The notes beneath the pieces are model-generated. The model made no database searches, was not told the origin of the DNA, and was given only the letters and a program-made list of their open reading frames with translations. 64,000 nt of DNA, from positions 310,001 through 374,000 of IMG/VR virus record IMGVR_UViG_3300050821_013430; one strand, written 5' to 3'. Below, in pieces: positions 3,232-54,792 of the stretch (the stretch's first letter is position 1; every line of letters begins with the position of its first letter). The translations under genes were made by a program, and so were the position numbers.

Positions 3232-3510
3232 TTAGTGTGGTAAGTAGCATTGAGGACATACGGCTTGCTTGATCTCGGAGGCTGCGACGTACCAGAGTTT
3301 GCTGGCCCTGTACTTGTCTTCCAGACCCTCGAACTTGTCGTAAGGCTGCCAGAGCCAGCCATGACCGTTTTGACTAAGGACGATGTAGCCGGTGTCATAT
3401 GCCTGCGGCGATAATGCATTAGTTGAATTGTAGGCTACGATAGTGTGAAACTGGCCACCACCGGTATCGAAACGAACTTCAATGGTGTCGCCAATTGAGT
3501 ACTTGTGCAT
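3232..3510 (-). CDS. CxQCxxxH-tail protein, SH3-like N-domain (family A)
   Basis: MHKYSIGDTIEV...VCPQCYLPH*. Confidence 0.75.
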   Translation of the reverse strand: MHKYSIGDTIEVRFDTGGGQFHTIVAYNSTNALSPQAYDTGYIVLSQNGHGWLWQPYDKFEGLEDKYRASKLWYVAASEIKQAVCPQCYLPH

Positions 3511-3518
3511 AGTCGCTC

Positions 3519-3776
3519 CTAAGGATGGTTTTGCTTGCACTGCGGACAAACTTCTTCTACCACTGAGCCTCGGCTAACCCAGTAGAGTTTCTCGTTCTTG
3601 TACCTCTCATCCAATTCCTGGATTTCCTTGTAGAGGGTGGGGTTGCTTTCCTTCGTCCATCCATTCAACGGATTGAGAACAAAATACCCGCCATATCCAC
3701 GGCCAACGATGATATGGTAATGGGTATCGGCTACATAATGGCCCAACCGTACATGCGTTCCAACTGCGTATTCCAT
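3519..3776 (-). CDS. CxQCxxxH-tail protein, family A
   Basis: MEYAVGTHVRL...VCPQCKQNHP*. Confidence 0.75.
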   Translation of the reverse strand: MEYAVGTHVRLGHYVADTHYHIIVGRGYGGYFVLNPLNGWTKESNPTLYKEIQELDERYKNEKLYWVSRGSVVEEVCPQCKQNHP

Positions 3777-3779
3777 AGT

Positions 3780-4040
3780 CTATACTCCGTGGTGTTTGCC
3801 GCACTGAGAACAACGATCTTCGGTAATGACTTCTCCTCTGATCCACCAATACCGATGTCCATGATACTCTTGCGGCATCGCCGTGATCTTTACGTCTTCC
3901 ATCTCAAACCAGCCATCGTCTTGCAAGACCAGATATCCCTCTTCGCGATTGTAGATGGCATGCGCAGCGATCTTTTTCACCCCGGGCCCAATGCAGGTCG
4001 CATTACTGACATAGACCATCATTCCGATCGGATACTTCAT
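3780..4040 (-). CDS. CxQCxxxH-tail protein, family A
   Basis: MKYPIGMMVYV...RCSQCGKHHGV*; ATGA overlap. Confidence 0.75.
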   Translation of the reverse strand: MKYPIGMMVYVSNATCIGPGVKKIAAHAIYNREEGYLVLQDDGWFEMEDVKITAMPQEYHGHRYWWIRGEVITEDRCSQCGKHHGV

Positions 4041-4327
4041 CGCTTCACCTGCATGAGGATCACCCCTTCGTTGAGCCAAGCCAATAACTGCTTCCACTGC
4101 GTTTCCCCCAACGGAACAATCCGTTGCCAGTCCTTCTCGGACGCTTCTACCTCCGCCTCGAAGGCAAGCCAATCTTGTTGAGGCTGACCCCATGACGGGA
4201 CGCCCTTGATGAACTCGGAGTGTATAGTAGGGCTCAGGTTCAATAACCAAAGCCGAACAGCGATCAACTTCTCATCGTGATAGGCTAAGTGGTTAGTGCC
4301 TGGGATAGTAAGGTAGATAGTAGCCAT
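4037..4327 (-). CDS. Hypothetical protein
   Basis: Coupled overlaps at both ends. Confidence 0.55.
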   Translation of the reverse strand: MATIYLTIPGTNHLAYHDEKLIAVRLWLLNLSPTIHSEFIKGVPSWGQPQQDWLAFEAEVEASEKDWQRIVPLGETQWKQLLAWLNEGVILMQVKR

Positions 4328-4449
4328 TAGTATTCAGGAGTCCCCCTCTTACCACACCTGGTGCAAACATCGTAATAGACCTCTCCCCACTCATACCATC
4401 CTGCTTGTTTCCAATCATGGCCAAACAGCAAACAGTATAGGCGCTTCAT
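4327..4449 (-). CDS. DUF1660-like small Zn-binding protein (not in ORF track)
   Basis: MKRLYCLLFGHDW...CTRCGKRGTPEY*; TGATG/TAATG overlaps. Confidence 0.6.
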   Translation of the reverse strand: MKRLYCLLFGHDWKQAGWYEWGEVYYDVCTRCGKRGTPEY

Positions 4450-5222
4450 CAGAACTCACTGACCATAACGCCAAACTTCTTGCTATGTTCCTGATCGGTA
4501 ATCGCATCCTCGGGAAACTCGGTCTCGGCAAGAAGGGTCTTGATCGCAGTCTTCTCGGCTTCTAAGGCAGCAGCAGAGAAGGATTTTGACCACCACTGCT
4601 TAGAACAACCAGAGCATTCCACGCCCTTGAAACCACCGTCGTAGAACATCCAGGGGACAAGAGCGCATCTGCATTCCGGGCACCGCATTCCAACGTCTTG
4701 TTTCGATGTCTCGATCCAATACCTGCGTGTCTCTCTTTTGAGAGCAGCATTCCACGCCCTATCTTCCAGGACACCGCCCAACCTCTCAATGATACGATAG
4801 GAGGCTATGTTGTCATCGGCGCAGGTCAATAACGCCTTCTCAATGCCAAGGGCCTCGCAGATGGGCAGTGCTTGCTGCATCATCTCAGAGCCATATCCCT
4901 TGCGACGGAAGCGCTCTGCTACTGCATAGCCAATATGGCCACCATAGACTTTGAGGGATTCGGTAAGGCGATGTCGGATGCTGAGACGACCAACGATGGC
5001 TTGTCCCACGAAACCATAGAGCACGGTATGGGGGGCCCAGCCTTCGGGCAAGTCTTCTCCGACCTGATGCTTTTGCAGCAGGGAGAACAACTCCTTGTAG
5101 GTCATTCCCTCTCGCCAGGATGGGGCATACCAATGCTGGTCTTCGGGTTTCCAGTCTTTGAGACCGAGAAGCCAGGATTGTTCGTCAGTTTCGGTGAGGG
5201 GTCGTAGAACGAGTTTGGTCAT
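4449..5222 (-). CDS. GNAT acetyltransferase with C-terminal Zn-ribbon extension
   Basis: GHIGYAVAERFRRKGYG, LTCADDNIASYRIIERLGG; then CPEC...CSGC. Confidence 0.85.
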   Translation of the reverse strand: MTKLVLRPLTETDEQSWLLGLKDWKPEDQHWYAPSWREGMTYKELFSLLQKHQVGEDLPEGWAPHTVLYGFVGQAIVGRLSIRHRLTESLKVYGGHIGYAVAERFRRKGYGSEMMQQALPICEALGIEKALLTCADDNIASYRIIERLGGVLEDRAWNAALKRETRRYWIETSKQDVGMRCPECRCALVPWMFYDGGFKGVECSGCSKQWWSKSFSAAALEAEKTAIKTLLAETEFPEDAITDQEHSKKFGVMVSEF

Positions 5223-5225
5223 TGT

Positions 5226-9282: not shown

Positions 9283-9642
9283 TCAGACGAACTCCACTTC
9301 CACATCGTGCTTAGCGAAGATCTCCTTCACCGTTTCCTCACGCTTATCCTCAGCGATAGCGAGAGTATCGTTGGCTATCGTCAATTGATAGCACTCTTCC
9401 GAGACATTGAACACGTTGCCACCAAAGAGCCACTTTGCCGCTTCGATGGGGAATAGGGTATCCTTGTACAGGGCCTCAATACCAATCGGGGACTTGACGT
9501 CGGTCAGTTTCCCAGAGTCCAATCCGAGAGCCGCGCAGTAGAAACCGAGACAGCACTGCTTACCATCCTCCTTACGACGGAGATAGGCGTTGGTACTGCC
9601 TTCGCCTCGGAGCCAGGTAGATCGATCAATGGTGAGTTTCAT
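9283..9642 (-). CDS. Phage hypothetical protein (CCLG motif)
   Basis: WLRGEG...QCCLGFYC...ANDT. Confidence 0.55.
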   Translation of the reverse strand: MKLTIDRSTWLRGEGSTNAYLRRKEDGKQCCLGFYCAALGLDSGKLTDVKSPIGIEALYKDTLFPIEAAKWLFGGNVFNVSEECYQLTIANDTLAIAEDKREETVKEIFAKHDVEVEFV

Positions 9643-10067
9643 AGCGGTGTAATCCTTTCGATATGGCATGAGCCGTTAGGCCATGCGAAGGTATAGCGTT
9701 CGATGTTCTCACGAGAAAAGCACCTCAGGTAGCGGACAGCCTTCCGATTAGTGATTCGCCTCTGGTAGAAGGGATCATCAACGGAAGTGATGTTGATCTT
9801 GGGTTTGCCGTATTGAGAGTGGGTCAGATCGAAGATACGGCCTTCGTGCTCGACCCAAGCATGCCCGTTCTTTGGATCGGTAAAGTACTTGCCTACTACC
9901 AGGGTAGGCTGAAAGTCCATCTGCCTCAGTCTCAGGAAAAGCGAGTAGGAAGCAACTGAACAAGCGCCTTTGAGGGTCTGAGGCGAGAAACCTGCTTGAT
10001 GGGCTATTCGGGCGCAGGCGAGGCGAATGTCGGGGCCCAATTGCTTTTTGACCAGATGGTCGATCAT
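9639..10067 (-). CDS. Transglutaminase/papain-like fold protein
   Basis: GAC...GHAWVEHEGRIFDLT suggests a Cys-His-Asp triad. Confidence 0.5.
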   Translation of the reverse strand: MIDHLVKKQLGPDIRLACARIAHQAGFSPQTLKGACSVASYSLFLRLRQMDFQPTLVVGKYFTDPKNGHAWVEHEGRIFDLTHSQYGKPKINITSVDDPFYQRRITNRKAVRYLRCFSRENIERYTFAWPNGSCHIERITPL

Positions 10068-11081: not shown

Positions 11082-11357
11082 TCATTGAGAGATGCCTTTC
11101 GTTGAGTGGAATTGACCGCATTGTGGGCAGAGACAAGCCTTCAATGTATCGAGAGCCGCGAAGATCGGATCTGGATTACCAGCGGCATCTTCGGGATCAG
11201 GATACCAGCCCATTCCGTCATAGTGATCGTACCAGTAAGGAGACACCTTCCCATAATCCATCAGAGGGCGCGCTGCTGTATCGCAGTACTGGCATAGGAT
11301 GATTGGGGCTTCCGAACGGTAGGTAAGCGTCTTGGCGCAAACAAGGCAGTCGCTCAT
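11082..11357 (-). CDS. CxQCxxxH-tail protein, N-terminal CxxC..CxxC finger (family B)
   Basis: MSDCLVC...CQYC...CPQCGQFH. Confidence 0.75.
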   Translation of the reverse strand: MSDCLVCAKTLTYRSEAPIILCQYCDTAARPLMDYGKVSPYWYDHYDGMGWYPDPEDAAGNPDPIFAALDTLKACLCPQCGQFHSTKGISQ

Positions 11358-11587
11358 TGGTGATATCCCTTACACTGAGGACAGAGTGAGGCTCGTGTTG
11401 CTAACACCCTGTCTTGGTTTTTCGAGGTATTAGCCCAGCCATCTCCGCCATACCTTTCCCAGTAAGAGCGGATATACTCACAAACGGTGTCTCCCAGCCT
11501 ACGAGCATCAATTTTAGCGCAGGAGGCGCAGATCACAAGCGACTTTGTTTCGTACCTGCACTCTCGATCACAAACTACGCAGATCAT
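11354..11587 (-). CDS. CxQCxxxH-tail protein, family B
   Basis: MICVVC...CASC...CPQCKGYHQ*. Confidence 0.75.
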   Translation of the reverse strand: MICVVCDRECRYETKSLVICASCAKIDARRLGDTVCEYIRSYWERYGGDGWANTSKNQDRVLATRASLCPQCKGYHQ

Positions 11588-11829
11588 GGATGCACCTGCT
11601 TGCATTGAGGACAGAGGGCCAACTTCAATTGGACTGCCTTTATTCTCTCTCGCATCATTAGCGTATCCAAGAATCCGTTCCCGTCATGCTCCGCCCACCA
11701 ATTACGAAGGTGCTCAGATGGTTCTTTCCCTTGCAAGCGTTCATCGATCTCATCGCAAGCGGGGCAGAAGAACAATGGCAATTCGAGGCCATACCTACAC
11801 TCGCGTTCGCATGCTGCACACTTTCTCAT
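11584..11829 (-). CDS. CxQCxxxH-tail protein, family B
   Basis: MRKCAAC...CPAC...CPQCKQVHP*. Confidence 0.75.
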   Translation of the reverse strand: MRKCAACERECRYGLELPLFFCPACDEIDERLQGKEPSEHLRNWWAEHDGNGFLDTLMMRERIKAVQLKLALCPQCKQVHP

Positions 11830-12086
11830 AGGTGAAACTCTCCACATTGAGGGCATTGAGTGTTCCACTGCTTTGAGTGATTCCAAAAGGCAACCCAATC
11901 TTTCAGGCAATCGCACGCAGCATGCGCGAGGGTCGACCTCTCATTGGGGTCTCCCTTGGCCTTCAATTCCACCTTCGCCCCACACACCGAACATATGGCG
12001 GGCACCCTGACCTTGGCAAACTTCTTGCTGCCCACTGCTTTCAGGCCAAACCAACTCGGGTTGACCCAATACTCTAAGAACTCCAT
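11826..12086 (-). CDS. CxQCxxxH-tail protein (MEFLxYW subgroup)
   Basis: MEFLEYW...CSVC...CPQCGEFHL*. Confidence 0.75.
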   Translation of the reverse strand: MEFLEYWVNPSWFGLKAVGSKKFAKVRVPAICSVCGAKVELKAKGDPNERSTLAHAACDCLKDWVAFWNHSKQWNTQCPQCGEFHL

Positions 12087-12346
12087 CAATGCACCTCACC
12101 ACATTGTAAGCACAACTCGTTCCATTCCTTGCACATAGCCCACGCATCAGAGACATTGTGGACATGTTCGCATCTATCAGACGTCAGATAGGAACGCTCA
12201 CTTTTAGACCCAGGCTGCAACAACTTGATGGGATACTTGCAGATAGGGCATTCGGTTGGCATTCTGATCTTGATCGGTCTGCGAGGCATGCCTTCTGGCA
12301 AGACTCGAATAGCCCAAGAGTTGATCCAGTAGTCTAAGAACTCCAT
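12086..12346 (-). CDS. CxQCxxxH-tail protein (MEFLxYW subgroup)
   Basis: MEFLDYW...CPIC...CLQCGEVH*; tandem paralog of previous. Confidence 0.75.
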   Translation of the reverse strand: MEFLDYWINSWAIRVLPEGMPRRPIKIRMPTECPICKYPIKLLQPGSKSERSYLTSDRCEHVHNVSDAWAMCKEWNELCLQCGEVH

Positions 12347-14515: not shown

Positions 14516-14776
14516 TCACACTCCTTCGTGGTTTTCACCACACTGACGACATCTTCCGCGGCACTCAACAATCACATCATCCCACTCACTGCCCTTGGCA
14601 ATGGCAGATCCATAGTCTATCTGTATGCGTTTCATACCAGCATTGGGTATGCTGCCGTACATCACAATGCAAACTAATTCCGAGCACTTAGGGCACAGAT
14701 AGTGATAGCGGACGCCATCCTGCGTGCCACCAATGTAGTCGAAGTTAGCATCACAAACGGCGCAGGTTTGATTCAT
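14516..14776 (-). CDS. CxQCxxxH-tail protein, family B
   Basis: MNQTCAVC...CPKC...CRQCGENHEGV*. Confidence 0.7.
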   Translation of the reverse strand: MNQTCAVCDANFDYIGGTQDGVRYHYLCPKCSELVCIVMYGSIPNAGMKRIQIDYGSAIAKGSEWDDVIVECRGRCRQCGENHEGV

Positions 14777-15824: not shown

Positions 15825-16115
15825 CTATGGATGCGTTTTGCCGCATTGGGGGCAGACCTCCACTGAATCGAGAGAGACCCAAAAGACTCGTCGACCATTG
15901 TATTGTTGATCCCATTCACGAGCGATGCTACTATCTACAAGCACCCAGCCCCGATCGTTGAGTACGATATACCCCTCTTGGGAGAGATAGACGCCATAGC
16001 CAACGATAGTGGTCGGTCTGGTTTGATTCGTGTTTGGACTCGGCCGCTCTAATAGGCTGCCAGCAGCGGATGCACCAATTCTAACCTGAGTGCCGATGGG
16101 GAGTTTGGTGATCAT
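15825..16115 (-). CDS. CxQCxxxH-tail protein, family A
   Basis: LPIGTQVRI...TIVGYG...GYIVL..RGW...CPQCGKTHP*. Confidence 0.75.
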   Translation of the reverse strand: MITKLPIGTQVRIGASAAGSLLERPSPNTNQTRPTTIVGYGVYLSQEGYIVLNDRGWVLVDSSIAREWDQQYNGRRVFWVSLDSVEVCPQCGKTHP

Positions 16116-16355: not shown

Positions 16356-16625
16356 TCATGGATGTTCCTTTCCACATTGGTGGCAGAGGGAGGGGTCGAT
16401 GACGATCTGCCTAATCTCGGAGGCGCGCATCGTACCTGTCTCCCAGAAAGTCCAGCCATGATCCGTCGAGAAGCAGTCATCAATCGATCGATTGACCCAC
16501 ACTTGCAGTTGATCGGCACAAACCAGGAAACACGCCCGACAGATGATGATGCTGCCGTAGCGGATCTCACTCTCCCAGACATTGGGAATGGACTGATGGC
16601 AGCGAAGACAATTGGTGGTCGTCAT
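16356..16625 (-). CDS. CxQCxxxH-tail protein, family B
   Basis: CLRC...CRAC...CHQCGKEHP*. Confidence 0.75.
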   Translation of the reverse strand: MTTTNCLRCHQSIPNVWESEIRYGSIIICRACFLVCADQLQVWVNRSIDDCFSTDHGWTFWETGTMRASEIRQIVIDPSLCHQCGKEHP

Positions 16626-16628: not shown

Positions 16629-16898
16629 TCAATGCACCTTTCCACACTGAGAACAAGGATAGAACGGAGAGAGGGAGAGCAAGAGCGTCCACTTCTCCTG
16701 ACACTCCTTCGGAAGAGACCAGTAGTATGGGCCCCAGAAGGTATAGCCAGAGGATGTCGAGTGCAACTCATCTGAGGGGCGGAAGATGTCAGCCAGCGTC
16801 AGGCAAGAGCGTTGATCGAGACAACATGCCCTACACCAGATCATCCAATCCTTTTGCATCGTACCATTCACCTGGGCGTTGCAGCGATGGCAATTCAT
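16629..16898 (-). CDS. CxQCxxxH-tail protein, family B
   Basis: MNCHRC...CRAC...CSQCGKVH*. Confidence 0.75.
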   Translation of the reverse strand: MNCHRCNAQVNGTMQKDWMIWCRACCLDQRSCLTLADIFRPSDELHSTSSGYTFWGPYYWSLPKECQEKWTLLLSLSPFYPCSQCGKVH

Positions 16899-16901: not shown

Positions 16902-17171
16902 TCAGTGTTCCTTCCCGCATTGGGGGCAAAAGAGGCCAAACAGGCCTAAGATGGACGACCATATCTCCTGGGCCGTGCGTAGTTCTTCGGAGAAGAAGGT
17001 AGCGCCTTCCTTGATGAAGTGGGCCGCATCAATACTGTCCCAGAGTCCAAATCGTTTGAGTTGGTTTTTGACAGGAGTACAGCATTCCACGCAAAACCAG
17101 TGGAAGTCTTTGCCGAGGACGCGGGCTTTCGGCAAGTGCTTTTTGCAGGCACGGCAATAGACCATTTCCAT
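16902..17171 (-). CDS. CxQCxxxH-tail protein, family B
   Basis: MEMVYCRAC...CVEC...CPQCGKEH*. Confidence 0.75.
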   Translation of the reverse strand: MEMVYCRACKKHLPKARVLGKDFHWFCVECCTPVKNQLKRFGLWDSIDAAHFIKEGATFFSEELRTAQEIWSSILGLFGLFCPQCGKEH

Positions 17172-30466: not shown

Positions 30467-30522
30467 CAGTGTATCTCTCCGCATTGAGGACAGGAACGAT
30501 CGCAGCAACCACAAGAGGTCAT
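30466..30522 (-). CDS. 18-aa tail-only micro-ORF MTSCGCCDRSCPQCGEIH (not in ORF track)
   Basis: ATGA overlap upstream, TGATG overlap downstream, perfect tail. Confidence 0.6.
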   Translation of the reverse strand: MTSCGCCDRSCPQCGEIH

Positions 30523-42412: not shown

Positions 42413-43351
42413 TTATCCTATGATCTCTACGCCAAGAGTCTTGACTACGGCGTCCATGTAATTCAGAAGCGTAATCTGGCCCCCGCCCGCATATAACAAC
42501 CCAAATGGCCGATTACTGCCATTCATCACACAACAACTTCCCGAGTCGCCTCCGGAACTATACAGACCGCCGATGCCCGTCACTTCGATCTGATCCTTGA
42601 ATCCAAGGACTCCGCGTCGTCCGTAATTGACTCGCACATTGTCCAGCTCAATAGCGGTAATGTGGCCCAGAGTCTTTCCGGTGGTACGACCGAACTTGGC
42701 CACTTCCTGGCCCGGCTCGATCTCGTCATGGTGCATGACTCGCTTGTCCAACTTGCCCAAACCATGGACAGTGGAAGGATCGTACTTGACTCCATCCACC
42801 AATGTCGCCACTGCGGCGTCGACGACGTTTCCACGGCTCTGCAACTTGACCCACTTGGTCAGCTTGGCCACCGTATCGGACTCCTTGCCACCGTCATGCT
42901 TGCCGGGCTGATAGATAGCATCTCCCTCCTTGGCATAGTCGCAATTGGCGAGCACGTGATTGTTGCTGAGAACGAAAACGGTCTTGCCCTTCTGAGCAAA
43001 GCATCCGGTTGTTCCTGCCGTGATCTCGTAGTGCCCGATGCTGGCACCGATTCGGAGCGGACGATTCTTGCGCTGTCTCCAATCGGGGAGATCATCCGGA
43101 TTGCCGAATGCACACATCTCCGGAATCACCTTGAACTCGCATTCACCACCGACCAACTTGTGCACCAAGCCAGCCACCATTCCGAACGCACTCGCCTTGT
43201 CCGCTCTCAGGGCCAGGATGTTCTCCTTACCCTTGCGCGTGATTCCGACCGAGACGCTTCCGAAACCCATCGGGTTGGTGGTCATTGCCACCATCGAAGC
43301 CACCTGAGACAACACCTTGGATTTGCATTCGCGAACTGATTCCATCTTCAT
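42413..43351 (-). CDS. Trypsin-like (S1, Nal1-like) serine protease with prodomain
   Basis: LSNNHV (His), VDAAVA (Asp), GGDSGS (Ser), GRTTG. Confidence 0.88.
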   Translation of the reverse strand: MKMESVRECKSKVLSQVASMVAMTTNPMGFGSVSVGITRKGKENILALRADKASAFGMVAGLVHKLVGGECEFKVIPEMCAFGNPDDLPDWRQRKNRPLRIGASIGHYEITAGTTGCFAQKGKTVFVLSNNHVLANCDYAKEGDAIYQPGKHDGGKESDTVAKLTKWVKLQSRGNVVDAAVATLVDGVKYDPSTVHGLGKLDKRVMHHDEIEPGQEVAKFGRTTGKTLGHITAIELDNVRVNYGRRGVLGFKDQIEVTGIGGLYSSGGDSGSCCVMNGSNRPFGLLYAGGGQITLLNYMDAVVKTLGVEIIG

Positions 43352-43402
43352 GATCGTTCCTCTTTCCTTGTTAGGCCGCACTAAGGCAGCACTTGTTGCG
43401 TT

Positions 43403-43711
43403 TCACTTGTCGTCTGCTGTTCGCATGATGGCTTCGTACTTGCACGAATTACACTTGTAGTGGAAGTGCGATCTTGGGAAGCAGAAGTCATCGCAGAGTG
43501 GATAATCCGTTCCATTGCAGGCGATTGATCTGCACTTGGGACACCCGTACCCAACATAACTATGACCACGCTCTACATAGTCCTCCCATAGGAACTTGTG
43601 GGAGAACGGCTCCTCAATCTTGGGCTTCTTCCACTTCGACCAGCCTTTACTCATACTGAGGGTAGAGACTACACCAGCCGCGTAGCAGATGGTATCAACC
43701 AGGATAGTCAT
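43403..43711 (-). CDS. Membrane-anchored Cys/His-rich protein
   Basis: CPKC...C...C..SHFHYKCNSC; paralog of 32708..33136. Confidence 0.6.
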   Translation of the reverse strand: MTILVDTICYAAGVVSTLSMSKGWSKWKKPKIEEPFSHKFLWEDYVERGHSYVGYGCPKCRSIACNGTDYPLCDDFCFPRSHFHYKCNSCKYEAIMRTADDK

Positions 43712-43971
43712 GGGTGTTGTTCTCCGCATTGGGGGCACACCTTGCTTTTGAGACGGGCTCGGACTGTCTCGATGCCTGAATTGCGTCTTGCGCAAAGACC
43801 CTCACCACCCATCGATTGCCAGTGTTCCCGCCGATACTCCTCGATTTCAAGGCCCATCTCATTGAACACCAACTCAGCGCAAGATGGGCATGCCAGGGTA
43901 TAACCACTGCCTGGCAGCCCATACTCACACTCAATCAGTTTGCCGCAGACTGCACACGGGCGCGGGCTCAT
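43708..43971 (-). CDS. CxQCxxxH-tail protein, family B
   Basis: CAVCG...CPSC...CPQCGEQHP*; coupled to Clp stop. Confidence 0.75.
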   Translation of the reverse strand: MSPRPCAVCGKLIECEYGLPGSGYTLACPSCAELVFNEMGLEIEEYRREHWQSMGGEGLCARRNSGIETVRARLKSKVCPQCGEQHP

Positions 43972-46187
43972 GTCAGTACCAGTTTCCCATCCACCACATC
44001 CACCAATACCGTCCTGCCATTCTCGAAACGACCAGCCACGATCAATTCGGAGATGGGGTCTTGGATGTTCTTCATGATGGAACGCTTCAACGGGCGGGCG
44101 CCGAAACGCGGCTCGTAGCTGATATCCACCAACATCTGCTTGGCTTCGGGAGTCAGGTTGACCTTGGTCTTCCTGTTCTCCAACACCTTCTCCAAGTTGC
44201 GTAGTTGGATATCCACGATGCCCGTCAGATTCTCCTTGGTCAGCGGCTGGAAGACCACGATGTCATCAATACGATTGATGAACTCCGGTCGAAGGTGCTT
44301 CTTCACCTCTCCCAACAGGGTCTCCTTCAATTCCGCCACTCCTTCCGCCGAAGCGAAAGTCTCTGGGCGTTCTTTGGCCACATCCAAGATCAGCGGAGTG
44401 CCGATGTTGGAGGTCATGATTACCACGGTGTTGGAGAAGTCCGCAGTCTTACCACGACCATCGGTGAGTCGCCCATCATCCAGAACTTGGAGCAGGAGAT
44501 TGAACACGTCCGGGTGCGCCTTCTCCACCTCGTCGAAGAGGAGAACGGAGTATGGACGCTTCTTGACCGCCTCGGTAAGGTGGCCACCGGCCTCCGAATC
44601 GGCATAACCAGGAGGCGCACCAATCAACCGTTGAGCCATATGACGCTCCTGAAACTCCGACATGTCGAATCGAGTGAGAGCCTTCTCATCATCGAAGAGG
44701 AACTCAGCGAGTGCTTTGGCCACTTCCGTCTTTCCGACACCGGAACTTCCCAGGAAGAGGAAGGATCCAATCGGTCGGGTGCCCTCTCTCAATCCAACGC
44801 GAGACCGACGCACCGACCTCGATACGGCTCCGATGGCTTCGTTCTGTCCAACCACCCTCTTGCCGAGAGTGCCTTCCATCTTGGACAACTTCTCGTTCTC
44901 CGCTTCCATCATCTTGGATGCAGGGATGCCAGTCCAATCCGAGAGAACGGATGCCACGTCGTTATCCTCCACCAATTCGGCGGATCGGATCCGACACTTA
45001 GAACCCGCTTCGTCAATCAGGGAGAGGGCGGATTCCGGCAGGAACTTGTCCTGCACGTATCGCTTGGCCAGTTTGACTGCTGTTCCTGCCGCAGCCTCAT
45101 CGATCCTCAGACTATGGAAGATCTCGTATCGAGGGTAAAGAGCCTTGACGATCTCGGTGGCGAAGTCGAGAGAAGGCTCCTCGATGTTGAGCACGGTAAA
45201 GTGCTTCAACAGATTGGTATCCTTCTCCTGCACCTTCTTGTAAGAGCCCGGAGTGGAAGAGGCAAAGAATCGCGTCTTGCCGTTCATCAGGATGGGTTTC
45301 AGACAATCAGAGAGGTTGCCAATGGCTGCTCCCTGATTGACCACCGCTTCGATTCCGTCTATGAACAGGATGACATCGTTCTTCAACAGAGCGACAACTT
45401 GCTTGATCCTCTCATCAACTTCGCCTCTGGCCTTGACGCCTGCGAAGAGTTCGTTCATCTCCAATTGCAGAATGGAGACGTGTTTCAGATTGGGCGGGAC
45501 GTTGCCGGAGTTGATCGCCTTGGCCAGAGCCATGACGATGGTGGTCTTGCCCACGCCATACTCACCCACCAGGATAGGGTGGTTCTTGGAATGACGACCC
45601 AAGATTTGGATCAGCCGCTTCAACTCCTTCTCTCGACCTACCAATGGATCGGTATCCGTCTTGGCCAGAAGAGACAAGTCCTTGGTGTACTTGCCTACTC
45701 GGGAAGCCTGCTCGCGCTTACCCTGTAAGAACTCGTTGAATGGATCGAAGGCTCCCTTGTTGAGCGAGAAGGTCTTCAACAAGGTATTGGCCGCACCATT
45801 GACTTCGGCTGAAACCAGAGAGAGGAGATCCTCGATCTGAATCGGATTGCCATCCTTCCGCTTCTCGATCTTGGAGAAGAGGGAGAGGAGACGACCGGGC
45901 CAATAGGCGTGCTCGTTTTGCGTCTTGGGAAGAAGAGTGAGCGAGCTCTTGATGGCTGCTTCGCATACCAGCAGATCAATGCCGAGCCTCTCCAAGATCT
46001 CCTTGACCACATCCATCTCGAAGAGACAGGCGAAGATATGGATCGGGTCGACGACTTCGTGGCGATTCTTGTCCGCCAGTTTCTCCGCCTTGACCATGAT
46101 CTCTCGTGCTTCTCGCGCGAAAGTCTTCAAGTCAAGCGACTTGACCTTCTCAGTCGCAGTGCCGTTCTGGGTAGCGTTGTTCTCCAT
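43968..46187 (-). CDS. ClpA/ClpB-family AAA+ ATPase, atypical
   Basis: Clp N-domain; GEYGVGKT; GSSGVGKTE; LLFDEVEKAHPDVF; FRPE-like and GARPL motifs. Confidence 0.92.
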   Translation of the reverse strand: MENNATQNGTATEKVKSLDLKTFAREAREIMVKAEKLADKNRHEVVDPIHIFACLFEMDVVKEILERLGIDLLVCEAAIKSSLTLLPKTQNEHAYWPGRLLSLFSKIEKRKDGNPIQIEDLLSLVSAEVNGAANTLLKTFSLNKGAFDPFNEFLQGKREQASRVGKYTKDLSLLAKTDTDPLVGREKELKRLIQILGRHSKNHPILVGEYGVGKTTIVMALAKAINSGNVPPNLKHVSILQLEMNELFAGVKARGEVDERIKQVVALLKNDVILFIDGIEAVVNQGAAIGNLSDCLKPILMNGKTRFFASSTPGSYKKVQEKDTNLLKHFTVLNIEEPSLDFATEIVKALYPRYEIFHSLRIDEAAAGTAVKLAKRYVQDKFLPESALSLIDEAGSKCRIRSAELVEDNDVASVLSDWTGIPASKMMEAENEKLSKMEGTLGKRVVGQNEAIGAVSRSVRRSRVGLREGTRPIGSFLFLGSSGVGKTEVAKALAEFLFDDEKALTRFDMSEFQERHMAQRLIGAPPGYADSEAGGHLTEAVKKRPYSVLLFDEVEKAHPDVFNLLLQVLDDGRLTDGRGKTADFSNTVVIMTSNIGTPLILDVAKERPETFASAEGVAELKETLLGEVKKHLRPEFINRIDDIVVFQPLTKENLTGIVDIQLRNLEKVLENRKTKVNLTPEAKQMLVDISYEPRFGARPLKRSIMKNIQDPISELIVAGRFENGRTVLVDVVDGKLVLT

Positions 46188-46785: not shown

Positions 46786-46974
46786 TCAGTGAAACTGGCC
46801 ACACTGAGGGCAAAGAGTGCCTCGTTCATCGCGGAAGTACTGTACCAGACTGGGAACGAAGACGCCGTTTTCACAAGGCCAATGACACCAAGCGATCGGA
46901 TCATCGGCGTAATGAGAGCCATAGTTCTCACCACAAGCCAAACACTTGGTGTCCATCGGTATATTGACCTTCAT
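46786..46974 (-). CDS. CxQCxxxH-tail protein (CxxC..GxH subgroup)
   Basis: CLACGENYGSHY...CPQCGQFH*. Confidence 0.7.
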   Translation of the reverse strand: MKVNIPMDTKCLACGENYGSHYADDPIAWCHWPCENGVFVPSLVQYFRDERGTLCPQCGQFH

Positions 46975-48041: not shown

Positions 48042-48299
48042 TTACGATGGCCCATGAATCCCTCCGCACTGCGGACACAATAGCGACTCGATTCGTTTGG
48101 CTGGTGGAGAGCCACGGCCCTGCCACGCAAACCCCTGTCTCTTGGAATATCCGTCATCATCGTAGTCCTGTACGTCTTTGATCAGATGGCCATGCTTGAC
48201 ATAACAAGCACGACACCAGATGATGTCTTCGTCATTGGCATGACAAGTGGCCAACGAATTGGTGATGACTGCTTGGCAGAGATTGCAGGATGCGCTCAT
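48042..48299 (-). CDS. CxQCxxxH-tail protein, family B
   Basis: CNLCQAVI...WCRAC...YDDDG...CPQCGGIHGPS*. Confidence 0.75.
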   Translation of the reverse strand: MSASCNLCQAVITNSLATCHANDEDIIWCRACYVKHGHLIKDVQDYDDDGYSKRQGFAWQGRGSPPAKRIESLLCPQCGGIHGPS

Positions 48300-48544
48300 A
48301 GGTGCAGCCTTCCACATTGGGAACAGCACAATGGCTGAATACTCCACCAAGTCGTTGCATTGCGACTCCACCAAGCAAACCCGTGTCTGCTGGAAAAGCC
48401 ATCGTCATCATAGGTCAGGAAGTCCTTGATCAGATGGTAGCGCTCCACGAAACAGGTACGGCACCAATTGACGATGTTGGAATGATCGAAAGCCAATGGC
48501 CCAATGATGGTGGCTTGGCAGATCTGACAAGTAGCAACACTCAT
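48296..48544 (-). CDS. CxQCxxxH-tail protein, family B
   Basis: CQICQATI...WCRTC...YDDDG...CSQCGRLHL*; tandem paralog. Confidence 0.75.
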   Translation of the reverse strand: MSVATCQICQATIIGPLAFDHSNIVNWCRTCFVERYHLIKDFLTYDDDGFSSRHGFAWWSRNATTWWSIQPLCCSQCGRLHL

Positions 48545-48801
48545 AGATGAATCCTTCCACATTGAGGACAAACCTCAGGGTCTTGATCGAAGAAGTTGCC
48601 TGGACTTTTGTTCGGCAGCAACTCTCTCACTCGTGCGTCCAAACATCCGAGCACGCCCGCCACTTCTTTGGCCTGATGCCAGGTCAGCGGCTCAGGATTC
48701 TTAGGGTCTTGCAAGCCGTTATGAAAGGGGAAACGACGGTTAGTCCAACGATAACTGCCATCATAGTTCTTGACCCAAACTCCAAACACTCGTGTACTCA
48801 T
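48541..48801 (-). CDS. CxQCxxxH-tail protein (family C, FxVW..RWT)
   Basis: VFGVW...RWT...RELLP..SPGNFFDQDPEVCPQCGRIHL*. Confidence 0.8.
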   Translation of the reverse strand: MSTRVFGVWVKNYDGSYRWTNRRFPFHNGLQDPKNPEPLTWHQAKEVAGVLGCLDARVRELLPNKSPGNFFDQDPEVCPQCGRIHL

Positions 48802-49688: not shown

Positions 49689-49889
49689 TCAATGGTACCT
49701 GCTGCATTGAGGACAACGATCTACATCCTTGCGGGCGGTTCTCCCCGAATCGATGAAGGATGTTCCTTCCATGAACCTGTTCTTGAATCGTGGCCCGTTA
49801 TTCGCATCTTGTGGACACCACCCACTCCTGCAAGAGTGTTCTCCTCTTCGGAAACTGCACAGATTGCAAACGGCATCGCGAGTGTTCAA
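49689..49889 (-). CDS. CxQCxxxH-tail protein (CxxC..GxH subgroup)
   Basis: TTG start; CNLC..RGEH...CPQCSRYH*. Confidence 0.7.
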   Translation of the reverse strand: MNTRDAVCNLCSFRRGEHSCRSGWCPQDANNGPRFKNRFMEGTSFIDSGRTARKDVDRCPQCSRYH

Positions 49890-50107
49890 TGATACCTCCC
49901 ACACTGAGGACATCTCGGTACGCCTATGGTAGCCTCAGTCTTACCGGAAGAGACGAAGGCGGTAATGGCATACCCAGATTCGGGGTAAGTGTCTTTGGCA
50001 GACGGGCACACGGTAGTGCCAGCGGTCTTGCTGCCATGAGAGTAGTGCTTGCCGCGAGCGAACAAGCAAACAGAGCAGACGGTATCGTAAGGACTATCGT
50101 CGATCAT
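49886..50107 (-). CDS. CxQCxxxH-tail protein (CxxC..GxH subgroup)
   Basis: CSVC..RGKH...CPQCGRYH*. Confidence 0.75.
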   Translation of the reverse strand: MIDDSPYDTVCSVCLFARGKHYSHGSKTAGTTVCPSAKDTYPESGYAITAFVSSGKTEATIGVPRCPQCGRYH

Positions 50108-50343
50108 GGGTGCAGGTTTCCGCACTGCGGACAGTTTGGATCGGTCTCGAAAAAGCGACCTCGCGATCCATCAGCGAGCACTTCCCTAACTTCACACCTT
50201 GGATGCGGCGTGATCTCCTTCACCCACTTCGCTGCTTCTTGGTAGGTAAGTCGTCTTACACTCCCAGGGCCCTGGCCGTAGTTAGTCCAACGCTCAGGCC
50301 CGTTTGCGGGATAGCACCAGACATTGAAGACGATGCTACTCAT
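50104..50343 (-). CDS. CxQCxxxH-tail protein, family C
   Basis: VFNVW...RWT...REVLADG..G.FF...CPQCGNLHP*. Confidence 0.8.
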   Translation of the reverse strand: MSSIVFNVWCYPANGPERWTNYGQGPGSVRRLTYQEAAKWVKEITPHPRCEVREVLADGSRGRFFETDPNCPQCGNLHP

Positions 50344-50585
50344 GGGTGCAACTCTCCACATTGATGGCAAGTGGGGTTTTGCGTGAAGACGTTGCCTGGG
50401 CTGCCATCCGTAAGGACTTCCCTGATCACCGGATGACGATCATTGCTGATCGAAGCCATAAGTCTCGCTGCCTCAACATAGGTCAGTCGGTTTGGGTTTT
50501 CAGGATCGTTGCCACCAGCGATAGTCCAACGAGAGACTGAGGTATCGTTCTTCTTCGGGGTTTGCAACCAGACATTGAATCGCAT
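50340..50585 (-). CDS. CxQCxxxH-tail protein, family C
   Basis: MRFNVW...RWT...REVLTDGSPG...CHQCGELHP*. Confidence 0.8.
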   Translation of the reverse strand: MRFNVWLQTPKKNDTSVSRWTIAGGNDPENPNRLTYVEAARLMASISNDRHPVIREVLTDGSPGNVFTQNPTCHQCGELHP

Positions 50586-52318: not shown

Positions 52319-52564
52319 TTACGGATGTATCTGACCACACTGAGGGCAACAACCCGGATCTTGTTCGTAGACTTGTCCGCAGGTATTGTCGGGTAGCAGT
52401 TCTCGAATGCTGAGTTCGTGCTGTTTCCATCCAGCACGACGGAGAGACGCCATCAATATCTCGGCTTCCTGATAGGACTTTGGAATAGGGGTTTCTTGGG
52501 ACTGACCACTATTAGTCCATCGATTGGCTTCGGGGATTGATACCCAGACATTGAAAACCATCAA
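52319..52564 (-). CDS. CxQCxxxH-tail protein, family C
   Basis: VFNVW...RWT...RELLPD...QDP.CCPQCGQIHP*. Confidence 0.8.
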   Translation of the reverse strand: MMVFNVWVSIPEANRWTNSGQSQETPIPKSYQEAEILMASLRRAGWKQHELSIRELLPDNTCGQVYEQDPGCCPQCGQIHP

Positions 52565-52794
52565 TGCACCTCACCACATTGAGGACAATAATCGGGGTCT
52601 TGGTCGTAGAAGGCGCCGGGAGATCCATCGGGAAGCACTTCTCGAATGCGAGGTTTCAACTCAACAAGGATGCCTCCTAACTTCCCCTTGACTTCTTTCC
52701 AGGTGAAGGGTTTTGGCGAGTTGGCAAACTGGCAACCAGAAGCAATCGTCCAGCGTTCCTTGCTACCATCGATGACCCAGATATTGAAGCGCAT
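52561..52794 (-). CDS. CxQCxxxH-tail protein, family C
   Basis: MRFNIW...RWT...REVLPDGSPG.FYDQDPDYCPQCGEVH*. Confidence 0.8.
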   Translation of the reverse strand: MRFNIWVIDGSKERWTIASGCQFANSPKPFTWKEVKGKLGGILVELKPRIREVLPDGSPGAFYDQDPDYCPQCGEVH

Positions 52795-52911: not shown

Positions 52912-52913
52912 AG

Positions 52914-53019
52914 TGGAATCCCCTTGAATCGAACAAGGACTCTAACCTCCTACTTGCCCCTTTTACACCGCGGAGGGACTTTCGGGAATCGATTAGAGAG
53001 GCTGTACCATCCTGATCCC
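52914..53019 (-). ncRNA. tRNA-like RNA resembling the tRNA-like domain of tmRNA (G3:U70, A73)
   Basis: GGGATC/GATTCC acceptor plus A; T-arm CCTTG-TTCGATT-CAAGG; 8-bp CTCTAATC/GGTTAGAG stem enclosing a 43-nt insert. Confidence 0.55.
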
Positions 53020-53241
53020 GTAAGCCCCCACCGTTGTTTTACGGGCTGAGGGGGCGATAGGCCCGGATGCACCGTTGCCAGTGCATGCAGCCTTCGTTGC
53101 CTTTACAGGCAAGCCCGGCTATCGGCCCGCGCCGGTATTTACATACCATGCGGAGAGGGCCAGTGCCATTGGATTGAAGTCATCTCACCAATGGCTTGCA
53201 ACATCTTTACTGCGGGGAGTTGCCAGACCCCTATTCCAGAA

Positions 53242-53667
53242 TCAGACCGCTTCCGCAGTCTTGCTCGACTTCTTCTCGACCGGCATATCCTCGCCATGCT
53301 CCATGTAATAGGCGAGGCTTTCTTCGTTGCGAATCGTGCAACCGCCTTTTCCACGACTAATGCGGAAGCGCGGATTGCTGCGCATACGCTCGACCACGCG
53401 ACGCTCGATCTCCTGAATCGTATCCGCCGAGGTCTCGATCTCCTTCATGGCAAGACCACGCCACACGGGAACCGTATAGCCCTTGTCATGATTCGCATCG
53501 GCGAGCTGATTCAGCACCTCGTCGATTCGCTCATCATTGGCAGCCTGCAACTCCAACCACGAATCGAGTTGCGACTCAAACTTGGCGATCGTCGCATTGC
53601 GATCAATCTCCTTAGTCTGATCATCACGCTCAAAATTGCTCACATCAAACGAAAACGTTGCGCTCAT
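53242..53667 (-). CDS. Hypothetical protein
   Basis: AGGA SD; basic C-terminal RISRGKGG hairpin. Confidence 0.6.
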   Translation of the reverse strand: MSATFSFDVSNFERDDQTKEIDRNATIAKFESQLDSWLELQAANDERIDEVLNQLADANHDKGYTVPVWRGLAMKEIETSADTIQEIERRVVERMRSNPRFRISRGKGGCTIRNEESLAYYMEHGEDMPVEKKSSKTAEAV

Positions 53668-53768
53668 GTTCCTATCCTGCTTTCTCTGTCTTGTTGTTGC
53701 CGTATCCTTGGGCCACGCATAATCACACCATGCGATCAGTTTGGCTTGCCAGCGAACGAGAGCGAACC

Positions 53769-54092
53769 TTAGCGTTCGTAATCTCGATCGCGTCGTCTGT
53801 CCTCATACCTTTCACGAGGAGGGGCTGCGGTCTTATTCACATCCTCCTCAGCAATGGGAGCGAAGCCAATCTTGGGCGTCGCAACCCAACGATTGGATCG
53901 TACGGTAGGAGACGGGGTGGAGCCAACGAAGAGGCTGATAGGAATCTCCGTCAGACCCACATAAGAGAGACCCTTCTGTCCCTCCTTATAGAAGACCTTA
54001 CACACCAAGCAGTTCTTGTTGACCGTCGAGTTTCTGACGGGCTTGACAAAACGATCCTGATCGATCTCATCGCGGAATAACTGGTTGAGCAT
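53769..54092 (-). CDS. Hypothetical protein with CxxC
   Basis: TAATG overlap. Confidence 0.5.
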   Translation of the reverse strand: MLNQLFRDEIDQDRFVKPVRNSTVNKNCLVCKVFYKEGQKGLSYVGLTEIPISLFVGSTPSPTVRSNRWVATPKIGFAPIAEEDVNKTAAPPRERYEDRRRDRDYER

Positions 54093-54499
54093 TACCGCTT
54101 CTCCTTCTTCTTGGTCTTCTTCTTGTCGCTCTTCTTCTCGGTTTTCTTGGCAGCCTTCTTCGCAGCCTTGGCTTCCTTCTTGGCCTGCTTTGCTATGCGC
54201 GCTTCCGCCTCTTCCAATGCCACCCTATCGGCATCTTCCTTGGCCCGTCTGCGAATCTCGACTTCCAATTCATCCGCCAATTTGAGCGCTTCCCCTGCGA
54301 GGTCTCGCAAGTGATCGGCATACAACTCACGGCTCAATGCAACGGAAGCCTCGCCGTTGTTGTAGTCAACGAGGAAGGACTCGGTAGAAAGAGTGATCTC
54401 CGCATGGTCGGTGCCAAACTGATTCCGAGTCTTGCGAAGTACCATGAGGGTATTACCCCAGCCGGGAGTGAATCGGATCTCATCGAGTTCGTTCGTCAT
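54092..54499 (-). CDS. Hypothetical protein with Lys/Ala-rich tail
   Basis: AGGA SD before MTNELD. Confidence 0.55.
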   Translation of the reverse strand: MTNELDEIRFTPGWGNTLMVLRKTRNQFGTDHAEITLSTESFLVDYNNGEASVALSRELYADHLRDLAGEALKLADELEVEIRRRAKEDADRVALEEAEARIAKQAKKEAKAAKKAAKKTEKKSDKKKTKKKEKR

Positions 54500-54792
54500 T
54501 GGAGTGTTCCTTGATGTAGTTGACCACATTGCGGGCAACATTGGAGGGCTTGTTGCCATTGCTGTCCGCGACAACAATCGGTAAAGGTATAGCCATCTTG
54601 TTCGAAGAGAGTCGTATCGGCACTACCCAACAGAGACTGAATAGCCGAATGCTTGCCACAGTCCGCGCACAAGAAGAAGAAGGGGGTCGATAGATGACCG
54701 GCATTGTTCTCATCCACCATCAGAGACTTGGAACATCCGACGCAGGGCTCTTGGTAGAGCGGCGTACCATACTTGGCTGATCGTGCAGTCAT
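54496..54792 (-). CDS. CxQCxxxH-tail protein, family B
   Basis: CVGC...CADC...CCPQCGQLHQGTLQ*. Confidence 0.7.
   Translation of the reverse strand: MTARSAKYGTPLYQEPCVGCSKSLMVDENNAGHLSTPFFFLCADCGKHSAIQSLLGSADTTLFEQDGYTFTDCCRGQQWQQALQCCPQCGQLHQGTLQ

Follow-up and report, generated by a model that had tools for sequence, protein, structure and literature searches.

Unrelated small proteins of a huge soil phage share a C-terminal, probably metal-binding tail

Why would dozens of small proteins from families that display no detectable relationship to each other end in the same few residues? The question is raised by a 64,000-nucleotide stretch of viral DNA (hereinafter, the window), in which an earlier note, based on the sequence alone, described 44 minus-strand ORFs ending in C-x-Q-C, 42 of these with a His exactly four residues after the second Cys and two with a C-x4-C variant, and interpreted the tail as a shared docking or sorting signal. 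Here, we asked whether this pattern is real, whether it is confined to the termini of these proteins, how far it extends beyond the window, and which of the possible explanations is best compatible with the evidence. The observation is confirmed and is stronger than originally described, whereas the interpretation is only partly supported.

All 45 C-x-Q-C motifs in the minus-strand reading frames of the window lie within 14 residues of a stop codon. One of these is an 8-aa ORF nested within another gene and is probably spurious, which leaves 44, the number originally given, with 42 His-containing tails and 2 C-x4-C variants (Table 1). The plus strand contains no DNA match to the full motif. 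As a control, we examined 79 other, Clp-bearing viral contigs (1.42 Mb, 12,334 ORF segments), which contained no CxQCx3H ends and only 5 CxxCx3H ends. The tail genes use 15 different codon combinations for the Cys, Gln, Cys and His residues and 4 Pro codons, so that selection acts on the protein, as the earlier note had argued from the free codon wobble. The described arrangement of the genes was also confirmed, with neighbors often being paralogs and with 24 of 42 tails followed by an ATG that overlaps the stop codon by 1–8 nt, mostly as ATGA. Minor corrections are required: a few starts are shorter than previously assigned (namely, 48042–48299 and 11584–11829), and the purported “SH3-like” group of 8 ORFs splits into at least three families (A, G and singles) that are not demonstrably homologous to each other.

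Table 1. Tail genes and other features of the window discussed in the text. Letters denote families of tail proteins; folds are predictions.
Coordinates	Strand	Length	Family	Remarks
3232..3510	-	92 aa	A	tail gene; predicted small beta barrel; tail CPQCYLPH
3519..3776	-	85 aa	A	tail gene
3780..4040	-	about 86 aa	A	tail gene; start uncertain
11082..11357	-	91 aa	B	tail gene; CxxC..CxxC, predicted helical; 7 residues after His
11354..11587	-	77 aa	B	tail gene; modelled with AlphaFold2
11584..11829	-	81 aa	B	tail gene
11826..12086	-	86 aa	E	tail gene
12086..12346	-	86 aa	E	tail gene
14516..14776	-	86 aa		tail gene; CxxC..CxxC type
15825..16115	-	96 aa	A	tail gene; no Cys or His outside the tail; modelled as a beta barrel
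16356..16625	-	89 aa	B	tail gene
16629..16898	-	89 aa	B	tail gene
16902..17171	-	89 aa	B	tail gene
17450..17710	-	86 aa	B	tail gene
17707..17976	-	89 aa	B	tail gene
17976..18218	-	80 aa	B	tail gene
18222..18914	-	230 aa		tail gene; N-domain, about 75-aa Cys-rich (metallothionein-like) stretch, poly-Glu/Asp linker, then the tail
19280..19501	-	73 aa	D	tail gene
20423..20653	-	76 aa	D	tail gene
20653..20850	-	65 aa	D	tail gene
30466..30522	-	18 aa		mini-ORF (Cys-rich stub plus tail), ATGA-coupled to the gene upstream; reality unproven
30519..30755	-	78 aa	B	tail gene
30752..30994	-	80 aa		tail gene; CxxC..CxxC type
30987..31226	-	79 aa	B	tail gene
31223..31462	-	79 aa	B	tail gene; 63%-identical homologue (P0033) keeps the tail
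34313..34591	-	92 aa	G	tail gene
34588..34878	-	about 96 aa	G	tail gene; 5 residues after His
38342..38611	-	89 aa		tail gene; tail followed by a 10-residue extension
38608..38814	-	68 aa		tail gene
38811..39020	-	69 aa	B-like	tail gene
39684..39965	-			variant tail CPQCG-x3-C-G-K (Cys in place of His); same variant conserved in related phage locus L333
39991..40320	-			variant tail CPQC-x4-C; start uncertain
43708..43971	-	87 aa	B	tail gene; ATGA-coupled to the Clp ATPase gene
46786..46974	-	62 aa		tail gene
48042..48299	-	85 aa	B	tail gene
48296..48544	-	82 aa	B	tail gene
48541..48801	-	86 aa	C	tail gene; FNVW..RWT
49689..49913	-	66-74 aa	F	tail gene
49886..50107	-	73 aa	F	tail gene
50104..50343	-	79 aa	C	tail gene
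50340..50585	-	81 aa	C	tail gene
52319..52561	-	80 aa	C	tail gene
52561..52794	-	77 aa	C	tail gene
54496..54792	-	98 aa	B-like	tail gene; 5 residues after His
20987..24646	-	1,219 aa		tail-less; one B-like N-domain, about nine tandem family-A domains, C-terminal ~130-aa domain of unknown function; candidate hub or comparator
24768..26393	-	541 aa		tail-less; one family-A domain and the same C-terminal domain
9639..10067				weak transglutaminase-like hit
42413..43381				serine-protease-like gene, GDSGS motif
43968..46187				Clp-type ATPase gene

The window is part of a 472,749-bp viral contig that encodes at least 92 such proteins, and diverged relatives (loci L332 and L333; 44% GC against 52%) carry the same tail on several families. 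The consensus is C-[P]-Q-C-[G]-x-[I/V/L/F]-H, followed by 0–1 residues in about 77% of cases. In the window, Gln is present in 41 of 49 terminal CxxC motifs but in only 2 of 110 internal ones, both of which are near-terminal tails. Among 159 non-redundant tail proteins that were chosen without requiring Gln, this residue is present in 158 and His in 156, whereas the other CxxC motifs of the same proteins contain Gln in 6 of 266 cases. The only tolerated change of the His is to Cys with shifted spacing (CPQCG-x3-C), and this variant is conserved between this phage and L333. No tail protein matched any Pfam or PHROGs family, and no match to the shared tag was found in the PDB or in the literature, the nearest PDB sequence matches to a tail peptide being ordinary CPxCG knuckles.

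The tail is independent of the domains to which it is attached. There is no conservation at positions −30 to −1 relative to the tail, and BLASTP and profile–profile (hhalign) comparisons of at least eight tail-stripped families revealed no homology (hhalign probability of 20% or less), in agreement with the claim that the N-terminal domains are unrelated. The AlphaFold2 models of two families also differ: the family B protein is helical, with the tail modelled at pLDDT of about 80, whereas the family A protein is a beta barrel, with the last six residues at pLDDT 60. Furthermore, one tail is located behind a long poly-Glu/Asp linker. By contrast, the same A and B domains occur without tails as tandem repeats in giant proteins, namely, the 1,219-aa protein in the window and proteins of 3,226 and 3,283 aa elsewhere. 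Of the 97 small family B hits in a search of 1.84 billion representatives, 96 end in the tail, whereas the giant proteins with 17–19 B domains have none, and the loci of the giant proteins P0002 and P0003 hold no tail genes. For family A, however, homology between the small proteins and the repeats of the 1,219-aa protein is only moderately supported (hhalign E = 7e-5, probability 63%).

Thus, we propose that the tail is a self-contained C-terminal metal-binding knuckle, most probably for Zn2+, that supplies three ligands (Cys, Cys, His) and is attached as a tag to free-standing small domains of many unrelated folds. The three invariant ligand-type residues with knuckle spacing, along with the Pro and Gly typical of rubredoxin-type knuckles, and the His-to-Cys variant, which is what would be expected of a metal ligand, make metal binding likely. 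The tag itself would leave one coordination position open. In families H and G, a single invariant upstream Cys could fill this position, whereas families A and C have no conserved fourth ligand, and one family A member has no other Cys or His at all, so that the position would be filled in trans. In this view, the tag is a connector that clasps free-standing modules to each other or to a common partner, replacing the covalent concatenation of the same A and B modules that is seen in the tail-less giant proteins of this phage and of sister phages. The analysis establishes the motif, its specificity, its independence of the N-terminal domain, its conservation across diverged phages and its absence from the concatenated copies; metal binding, the open fourth position and the connector role are all inferred, and the complete scenario, including the connector role, remains tentative. 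No metal, oligomer or partner has been observed, and every functional step is inference. Indeed, if any tail could pair with any other, about 100 proteins would form uncontrolled heteromers, and the family B tail might pack against the N-terminal Cys4 knuckles of its own protein. The invariant Gln need not be a recognition residue either: it could be purely structural, for example, a second-shell residue orienting the His. Of the three conditions that had been set in advance as refuting the docking interpretation, none holds as a general statement: CxQCx3H ends are absent from the other viral contigs examined, the N-terminal domains are not all homologous, and completion of the site within a single molecule could apply to families H and G but lacks a conserved ligand in A and C. 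The effector or anti-defence roles suggested in the earlier note are pure inference, because no tail protein matches a Pfam or PHROGs family.

Alternatively, the tail could be an intramolecular cap, a minimal zinc (or other metal) knuckle that only rigidifies or protects the C-terminus of very small proteins, with the fourth ligand provided by a family-specific Cys, His, Asp or Glu, by water or by the terminal carboxylate, and with no function in trans. The exactly one invariant upstream Cys in families H and G would give a complete Cys3His set, families D, B, E and F have further conserved Cys or His residues, the family B tail is modelled with fairly high confidence, and the His is usually the last or second-to-last residue, so that the carboxylate is nearby. 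However, the occurrence of tail-less A and B domains within the giant proteins, the absence of a conserved ligand in families A and C and the acidic linker all speak against this possibility, and an invariant Gln along with one identical motif across at least eight folds are hard to explain by independent local stabilization; we consider it less likely than the connector reading. Less likely still is a sorting or turnover signal read by one dedicated machine, such as a phage unfoldase/protease (the Clp-type ATPase and the serine-protease-like gene product), a capsid-loading site or an export route, which would set the timing or location of about 100 early proteins. A shared terminal tag on unrelated proteins is how degrons, capsid-targeting peptides and encapsulin cargo peptides work, a tail gene is ATGA-coupled to the Clp ATPase gene, the protease-like gene lies next to it, and a Nal1-like protease gene is also found near the giant protein in L335, a locus of another lineage. 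Nevertheless, the Clp-degron idea has no specific support: the phage Clp ATPase lacks a ClpP-docking [ILVM]-G-[FL] loop in its second AAA domain, the residues after the His are not conserved and the distance to the C-terminus varies from 0 to 10 residues, the L335 lineage has the protease-like gene but no tails, Clp-bearing viral contigs in general lack the tail, and no receptor was identified.

Other chemistry appears improbable. CPxC motifs can be redox-active or can bridge Fe-S clusters, as in CPxC scaffold proteins, and one could further envisage Ni, Cu or heme binding or post-translational modification of the invariant Gln and Cys residues. Weak, sub-threshold Fer4 matches cover one tail, the weak transglutaminase-like hit lies in the window, and simple zinc binding does not explain the invariant Gln, but all these database hits are below threshold, there is no thioredoxin fold or maturase context, and the His-to-Cys variant and the knuckle consensus best fit a simple metal site. 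Finally, the possibility that the tail is a by-product of constraints at the nucleic acid level, that is, a DNA repeat or a ribosome-binding or overlap cassette for the next gene, is effectively refuted by the codon analysis. Such constraints do contribute: 18 of the 24 coupled tails contain a Shine-Dalgarno-like 4-mer in tail codons 4 to the end, the residue after the His is set by the ATGA overlap, and part of the terminal position of the tail and its Gly-Glu/Lys codons also serve gene packing and ribosome binding for the next gene. However, the Cys, Gln and His codons are not Shine-Dalgarno-like, uncoupled tails keep the motif, and the motif is conserved at the protein level in phages with 44% GC.

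Among the known systems, the rubredoxin-type zinc knuckle or zinc ribbon (CPxCG), as in the C-terminal ribbons of topoisomerase I and in HVO_2753-type small zinc-finger proteins, shares with the tail the C-P-x-C-G turn with two Cys ligands, and CPQCG pairs occur inside 700–960-aa cellular proteins that are presumably topoisomerase I-like. However, a ribbon needs two knuckles (four ligands) inside a folded domain, whereas the tail is one knuckle plus a His at +4, sits at the extreme C-terminus, has an invariant Gln at the normally free x position and occurs on proteins with no second knuckle (families A and C). The mechanism proposed here is, by analogy, that of intermolecular zinc sites, namely, the Rad50 zinc hook, with a CxxC from each of two chains, and the CD4/CD8–Lck zinc clasp, in which a short Cys motif that cannot complete tetrahedral coordination alone joins two polypeptides; but the hook sits at the apex of a coiled coil and has no His, the clasp uses CxC plus CxxC from two specific partners, and neither is a terminal tag shared by about 100 proteins. 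Dockerin–cohesin cellulosomes, encapsulin cargo-loading peptides, the T4 capsid-targeting sequence, poxvirus ankyrin/PRANC adaptors and ssrA-type degrons offer only a functional analogy, that is, one short terminal module on many unrelated proteins, implying one reader, with both repeat-rich giant proteins and free modules present in the same lineage; none of these is a Cys2His motif, and no reader was found here. The retroviral CCHC zinc knuckle (C-x2-C-x4-H-x4-C) and the ZAS anti-sigma motif (H-x3-C-x2-C), the latter being the mirror image of C-x2-C-x3-H, are compact Cys2His-containing metal motifs with similar local spacing, but the spacing or order differs and the fourth Cys is absent from the tail proteins, which either stop right after the His or continue without a conserved fourth ligand. 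The D-P-C-x-x-C-x-x-H motif of [NiFe]-hydrogenase large subunits is a Cys-x2-Cys-...-His metal motif that ends up at the very C-terminus of the mature protein, but its spacing is x2 rather than x3, it is one of two halves of a catalytic site and is exposed by proteolysis. There is no hydrogenase context in the present case, and the name “HypA/HybF” that one database source gives to a family B homologue is a generic zinc-finger mislabel.

The 472,749-bp viral contig IMGVR_UViG_3300050821_013430, in which window position x corresponds to about position x + 310,003, bears several marks of a huge bacteriophage. Nearly all genes lie on the minus strand and are densely packed, with 93% coverage by ORFs; Shine-Dalgarno sequences and ATGA-type overlaps are present; and the window carries two tRNA genes, TnpB, HNH and LAGLIDADG mobile genes, and a two-ring Clp-type ATPase. 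No close relative among reference phages was detected by megablast, and the Clp ATPase is at most 47% identical to anything in the phage collection and at most 38% identical to its counterparts in other IMG/VR contigs. By contrast, near-identical strain variants occur in other metagenomes and differ in their homing-endonuclease genes, one of them (L082) having two extra HNH genes and another (L081) a shorter HNH. The features discussed here are collected in the table.

Features of the window and of loci from related phages (L333, contig from a phage with 44% GC; L335 and L336, loci of the giant repeat proteins)
Sequence	Coordinates	Strand	Feature
Window	1756-3069 and 63287-63889	+ and -, respectively	Full-length TnpB (OrfB_IS605 / Cas12f-like TNB domain) gene and a second, shorter copy at the other end of the window
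Window	10075-10734, 4449-5222, 5722-6579, 28005-28607, 29490-30113, 33140-33724	-	RNA ligase, GNAT acetyltransferase, an HNH/endonuclease VII-like protein, an EamA-type transporter domain, a matrixin-like zinc metalloprotease (just upstream of a tail array) and a metallophosphoesterase
Window	11354-11587	-	Family-B tail gene, modelled with AlphaFold2
Window	15825-16115	-	Family-A tail gene, modelled with AlphaFold2
Window	18222-18914	-	230-aa tail protein with an about 75-aa stretch holding about 30 Cys (metallothionein-like), then about 35 Glu/Asp, then the tail
Window	19280-19501	-	Family-D tail gene
Window	19522-19553	-	Strong intrinsic-terminator-like hairpin (13-bp stem, T run) just upstream of the family-D tail gene
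Window	20987-24646	-	1,219-aa giant repeat protein
Window	24768-26393	-	541-aa repeat protein
Window	26498-27256, 41318-42409, 55162-56202	+	Homing-endonuclease genes (two HNH, one LAGLIDADG) in gaps of the minus-strand gene array
Window	30466-30522	-	18-aa ORF consisting of a Cys-rich stub plus the tail
Window	50340-50372, 30752-30787	-	Examples of tail codons 4-8 forming the Shine-Dalgarno sequence of the next gene
Window	35394-35482 and 58282-58360	-	tRNA-Leu(CAA) and tRNA-Ile(TAT) genes
Window	42413-43381	-	322-aa protein with a GDSGS serine-protease motif (Nal1_C-like, below threshold)
Window	43968-46187	-	Two-ring Clp-type ATPase without a recognisable ClpP-docking loop
L333	12077-13991 and 14045-15125		Kelch-repeat beta-propeller proteins and DUF723 proteins next to tail genes
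L335	10001-19852		3,283-aa giant repeat protein
L336	10001-19681		3,226-aa giant repeat protein

The observation made in the earlier note, that 44 small minus-strand ORFs end in C-x-Q-C, mostly followed by His, holds. All 45 C-x-Q-C motifs in minus-strand frames of the window lie within 14 residues of a stop codon, and removal of one nested 8-aa ORF leaves 44, of which 42 have His at +4 and two have C-x4-C, whereas the plus strand contains no match to the full motif. The four fixed residues use 15 codon combinations and Pro uses four codons, indicating that selection acts on the protein; together with the empty plus strand, this leads us to reject an origin as a DNA repeat. A general phage property or chance is likewise rejected, given that 79 other viral contigs carrying a Clp ATPase (1.42 Mb, 12,334 ORF segments) have no such tail. 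In at least 120 cellular-genome loci, CPQCG pairs are mostly internal to large proteins, with a single isolated 50-aa ORF segment (locus L321) ending in the motif, and no locus has a tail array. Within the window, a terminal CxxC has Gln in 41 of 49 cases, compared with 2 of 110 for an internal CxxC.

The tag is eight residues long and nothing more: an alignment anchored on the tail shows less than 0.6 bit of information at each of the 30 upstream positions. Among 159 non-redundant tail proteins, collected without requiring Gln, the consensus is C-[P 79%]-Q-C-[G 74%]-x-[V/I/L/F or K]-H, with Pro in 126, Gly in 117, Gln in 158 and His in 156 of the 159 sequences, and with 0 or 1 residue following His in 123 of 159. 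The other CxxC motifs of the same proteins have Gln in only 6 of 266 cases.

Hidden common ancestry of the domains preceding the tail is not supported. With the tails removed, BLASTP yields many separate clusters, and hhalign comparisons between eight families give probabilities of 20% or less, the only shared piece being a 13-column CxxC knuckle between families B and E. The AlphaFold2 models also differ. The family-B protein, modelled from a 39-sequence alignment, is predicted to be helical behind N-terminal knuckles (pLDDT 72), and Foldseek found no significant match for it in the PDB; the CxxC-x13-20-CxxC part of the N-terminal 40 residues of this family gives weak, non-significant PDB profile matches to LIM half-domains and to the N-terminal zinc-binding domain of ClpX (E 0.005-0.06). 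For family A, which the earlier note included among SH3-like proteins, the model is a predicted beta-rich small barrel (pLDDT 80.5, pTM 0.75) whose last six residues drop to pLDDT 60; the best Foldseek matches, to chromo-barrel and ribosomal-L19-type barrels, are weak (E of 0.18 or higher), and the tandem family-A repeats of larger proteins show partial SpoVT/AbrB Pfam matches. None of the 29 distinct tail proteins scanned reached a Pfam-A or PHROGs threshold, the hits being limited to sub-threshold generic zinc-finger or ferredoxin matches; the Cys-rich, metallothionein-like stretch of the 230-aa protein, seen directly in the sequence, has no family match either.

Loci from other parts of the same contig add at least 48 further tail genes, so that the genome has at least 92, spread over contig positions of about 241-392 kb. 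A profile of 39 family-B members searched against 1.84 billion representative proteins gave 155 hits, of which 97 are small, and 96 of those end in the tail; only 23 are proteins already known from this phage. Two source contigs come from phages with 44% GC instead of 52%, namely, L332, with 6 tails in 12 kb, and L333, with 10 tails in 20 kb, in which the tails sit on several families, including non-B ones, and include the CPQCG-x3-C variant. Thus, the tag is conserved across a diverged clade, whereas within orthologous pairs the free positions of the tail vary. The Kelch-repeat and DUF723 proteins encoded next to the tail genes of L333 are unusual content for a phage. By contrast, a search of 5.8 billion proteins with a family-C protein returned only the protein itself, and scans of IMG/VR and JGI metagenomes with two-tail DNA patterns recovered only this phage and its strain variants, although these scans proved insensitive to the AT-richer relatives, which were reached only through the profile search.

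The same domains exist without the tail when they are fused. The 1,219-aa protein consists of a B-like N-terminus, about nine tandem family-A domains and a C-terminal domain of about 130 aa, and its 541-aa neighbour has one A domain and the same C-terminal domain. Profile comparison of the small A proteins with the repeats is colinear over 64 columns (E = 7e-5, probability 63%), which provides moderate support for this relationship. The top two hits of the B profile are proteins of 3,226 and 3,283 aa with 19 and 17 matched family-B stretches, respectively, neither of which has a complete tail motif, internal or terminal, although one of them, P0003, has one internal C-x-Q-C without the His. 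Their 21.6-kb and 30-kb loci contain no tail gene. In one B subfamily, the tail follows an I-P-K motif, whereas in P0003 the repeat ends with I-P-K and runs straight into the linker. Thus, the tail is not needed for these folds but correlates with the domain being free-standing. All four repeat proteins end in the same, probably helical, C-terminal domain, for which searches of the PDB and PHROGs returned nothing and which may be an anchoring or targeting domain.

With respect to potential ligands, families A and C have no conserved Cys or His outside the tail, and the modelled family-A protein has none at all; families H and G have one invariant Cys, so that a complete Cys3His set is possible; family D has one Cys and one His; and families B, E and F have a separate four-ligand site. 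The tail is thus a constant three-ligand unit whose fourth ligand is not constant. Its Pro and Gly fit the C-P-x-C-G consensus of the rubredoxin-type knuckle, and PDB knuckles are the nearest matches, but the second knuckle, or two further ligands in the same domain, that a zinc ribbon requires is missing in families A and C. Retroviral-type CCHC knuckles have C-x2-C-x4-H-x4-C spacing with a fourth Cys, whereas here the spacing is C-x2-C-x3-H and the protein mostly ends within one residue of the His. In the Rad50-type zinc hook, CxxC lies at the apex of an antiparallel coiled coil, with Zn shared by two chains; the tail follows predicted beta-barrel or short helical domains, without a coiled coil. 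The C-terminal motif of [NiFe]-hydrogenase large subunits, D-P-C-x2-C-x2-H/R, occurs together with an N-terminal R-x-C-G-x-C in a subunit of about 60 kDa; the tail has x3 spacing, the tail proteins are 18-230 aa long, and Pfam shows no hydrogenase domain in them.

The interpretation offered in the earlier note, namely, that the tail is a docking or sorting signal for one partner, possibly a Clp degron, is supported only in part. Whereas the motif, its distribution and the variation of the attached domains can be read directly from the sequences, metal binding, the joining of polypeptides and any role in degradation are inferred. Metal binding appears likely, given the ligand chemistry, the knuckle consensus, the His-to-Cys variant and the generic-knuckle PDB matches. 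The reading we favor, more tentatively, is that the tail acts as a connector, based on the correlation between free-standing domains and the tail, the families that lack any fourth ligand, and the placement of the tail behind a poly-acidic linker in the 230-aa protein, which itself could buffer or deliver metal for the many tail proteins. The main rival is a purely intramolecular cap. A sorting or degradation signal is possible, but the residues after His vary in identity and number (0-10), contrary to the conserved extreme C-terminus expected of a Clp degron, and the phage Clp ATPase has no ClpP-docking [ILVM]-G-[FL] loop in its second AAA domain, even though the gene for the protein with the serine-protease motif lies next to it and a similar protease-like gene lies near the giant protein in L335. 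The invariant Gln may be a recognition residue or a second-shell residue orienting the His.

A more far-reaching and, on present evidence, unlikely possibility is that the tail is the plug of a zinc-clasp assembly system, a non-covalent counterpart of a cellulosome, in which each Cys2His tail would be completed by a single Cys offered by a hub. Candidate sockets are the lone loop Cys found at the same or an adjacent alignment column in 6 of 10 tail-less family-A domains of the 1,219-aa and 541-aa proteins. In this view, about 100 different binder modules could be mounted interchangeably on a scaffold carrying the conserved C-terminal domain as an anchor, whereas sister phages would achieve the same by fusing 17-19 modules into one protein of about 3,200 aa.

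The chemistry reuses an already described element, the CPxCG knuckle. However, a terminal Cys2His half-site with an invariant Gln, shared by about 100 proteins of unrelated fold per genome, fits no family or system that we could test or find, and a literature search for the motif and for related concepts returned nothing relevant. If the tag is a metal-dependent connector, it would represent a new way for a virus to build a large combinatorial set of small binding modules, and an eight-residue, genetically portable zinc-dependent docking peptide would be of direct interest for protein engineering. Even if it is only a structural cap, it would define the smallest known autonomous Cys2His unit with an invariant second-shell Gln, and would mark a large unexplored family, with at least 159 distinct sequences. 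Furthermore, the contrast between free modules with tails and the same modules fused without tails gives a direct way to ask what the giant repeat proteins of huge phages are for.

The tail also contributes to gene organisation. In 24 of 42 cases, the next ATG overlaps the stop codon of the tail gene, and 18 of those 24 carry a Shine-Dalgarno-like 4-mer inside tail codons 4 to the end, commonly codons 4-8, whereas the usual residue after His (P, L, S or Q) is simply the NNA codon that creates the ATGA overlap. The tail region therefore also serves as the ribosome-binding site of the next gene, which helps explain the Gly-Glu/Lys preference and the terminal position, but not the invariant Cys, Gln and His. 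The 18-aa ORF is ATGA-coupled upstream, with a Shine-Dalgarno-like sequence, and coupled downstream and, if translated, is a tail-only peptide. A sigma-70 promoter scan of the 3-21 kb region showed no enrichment. The terminator-like hairpin just upstream of the family-D tail gene suggests that this gene probably starts a new transcription unit.
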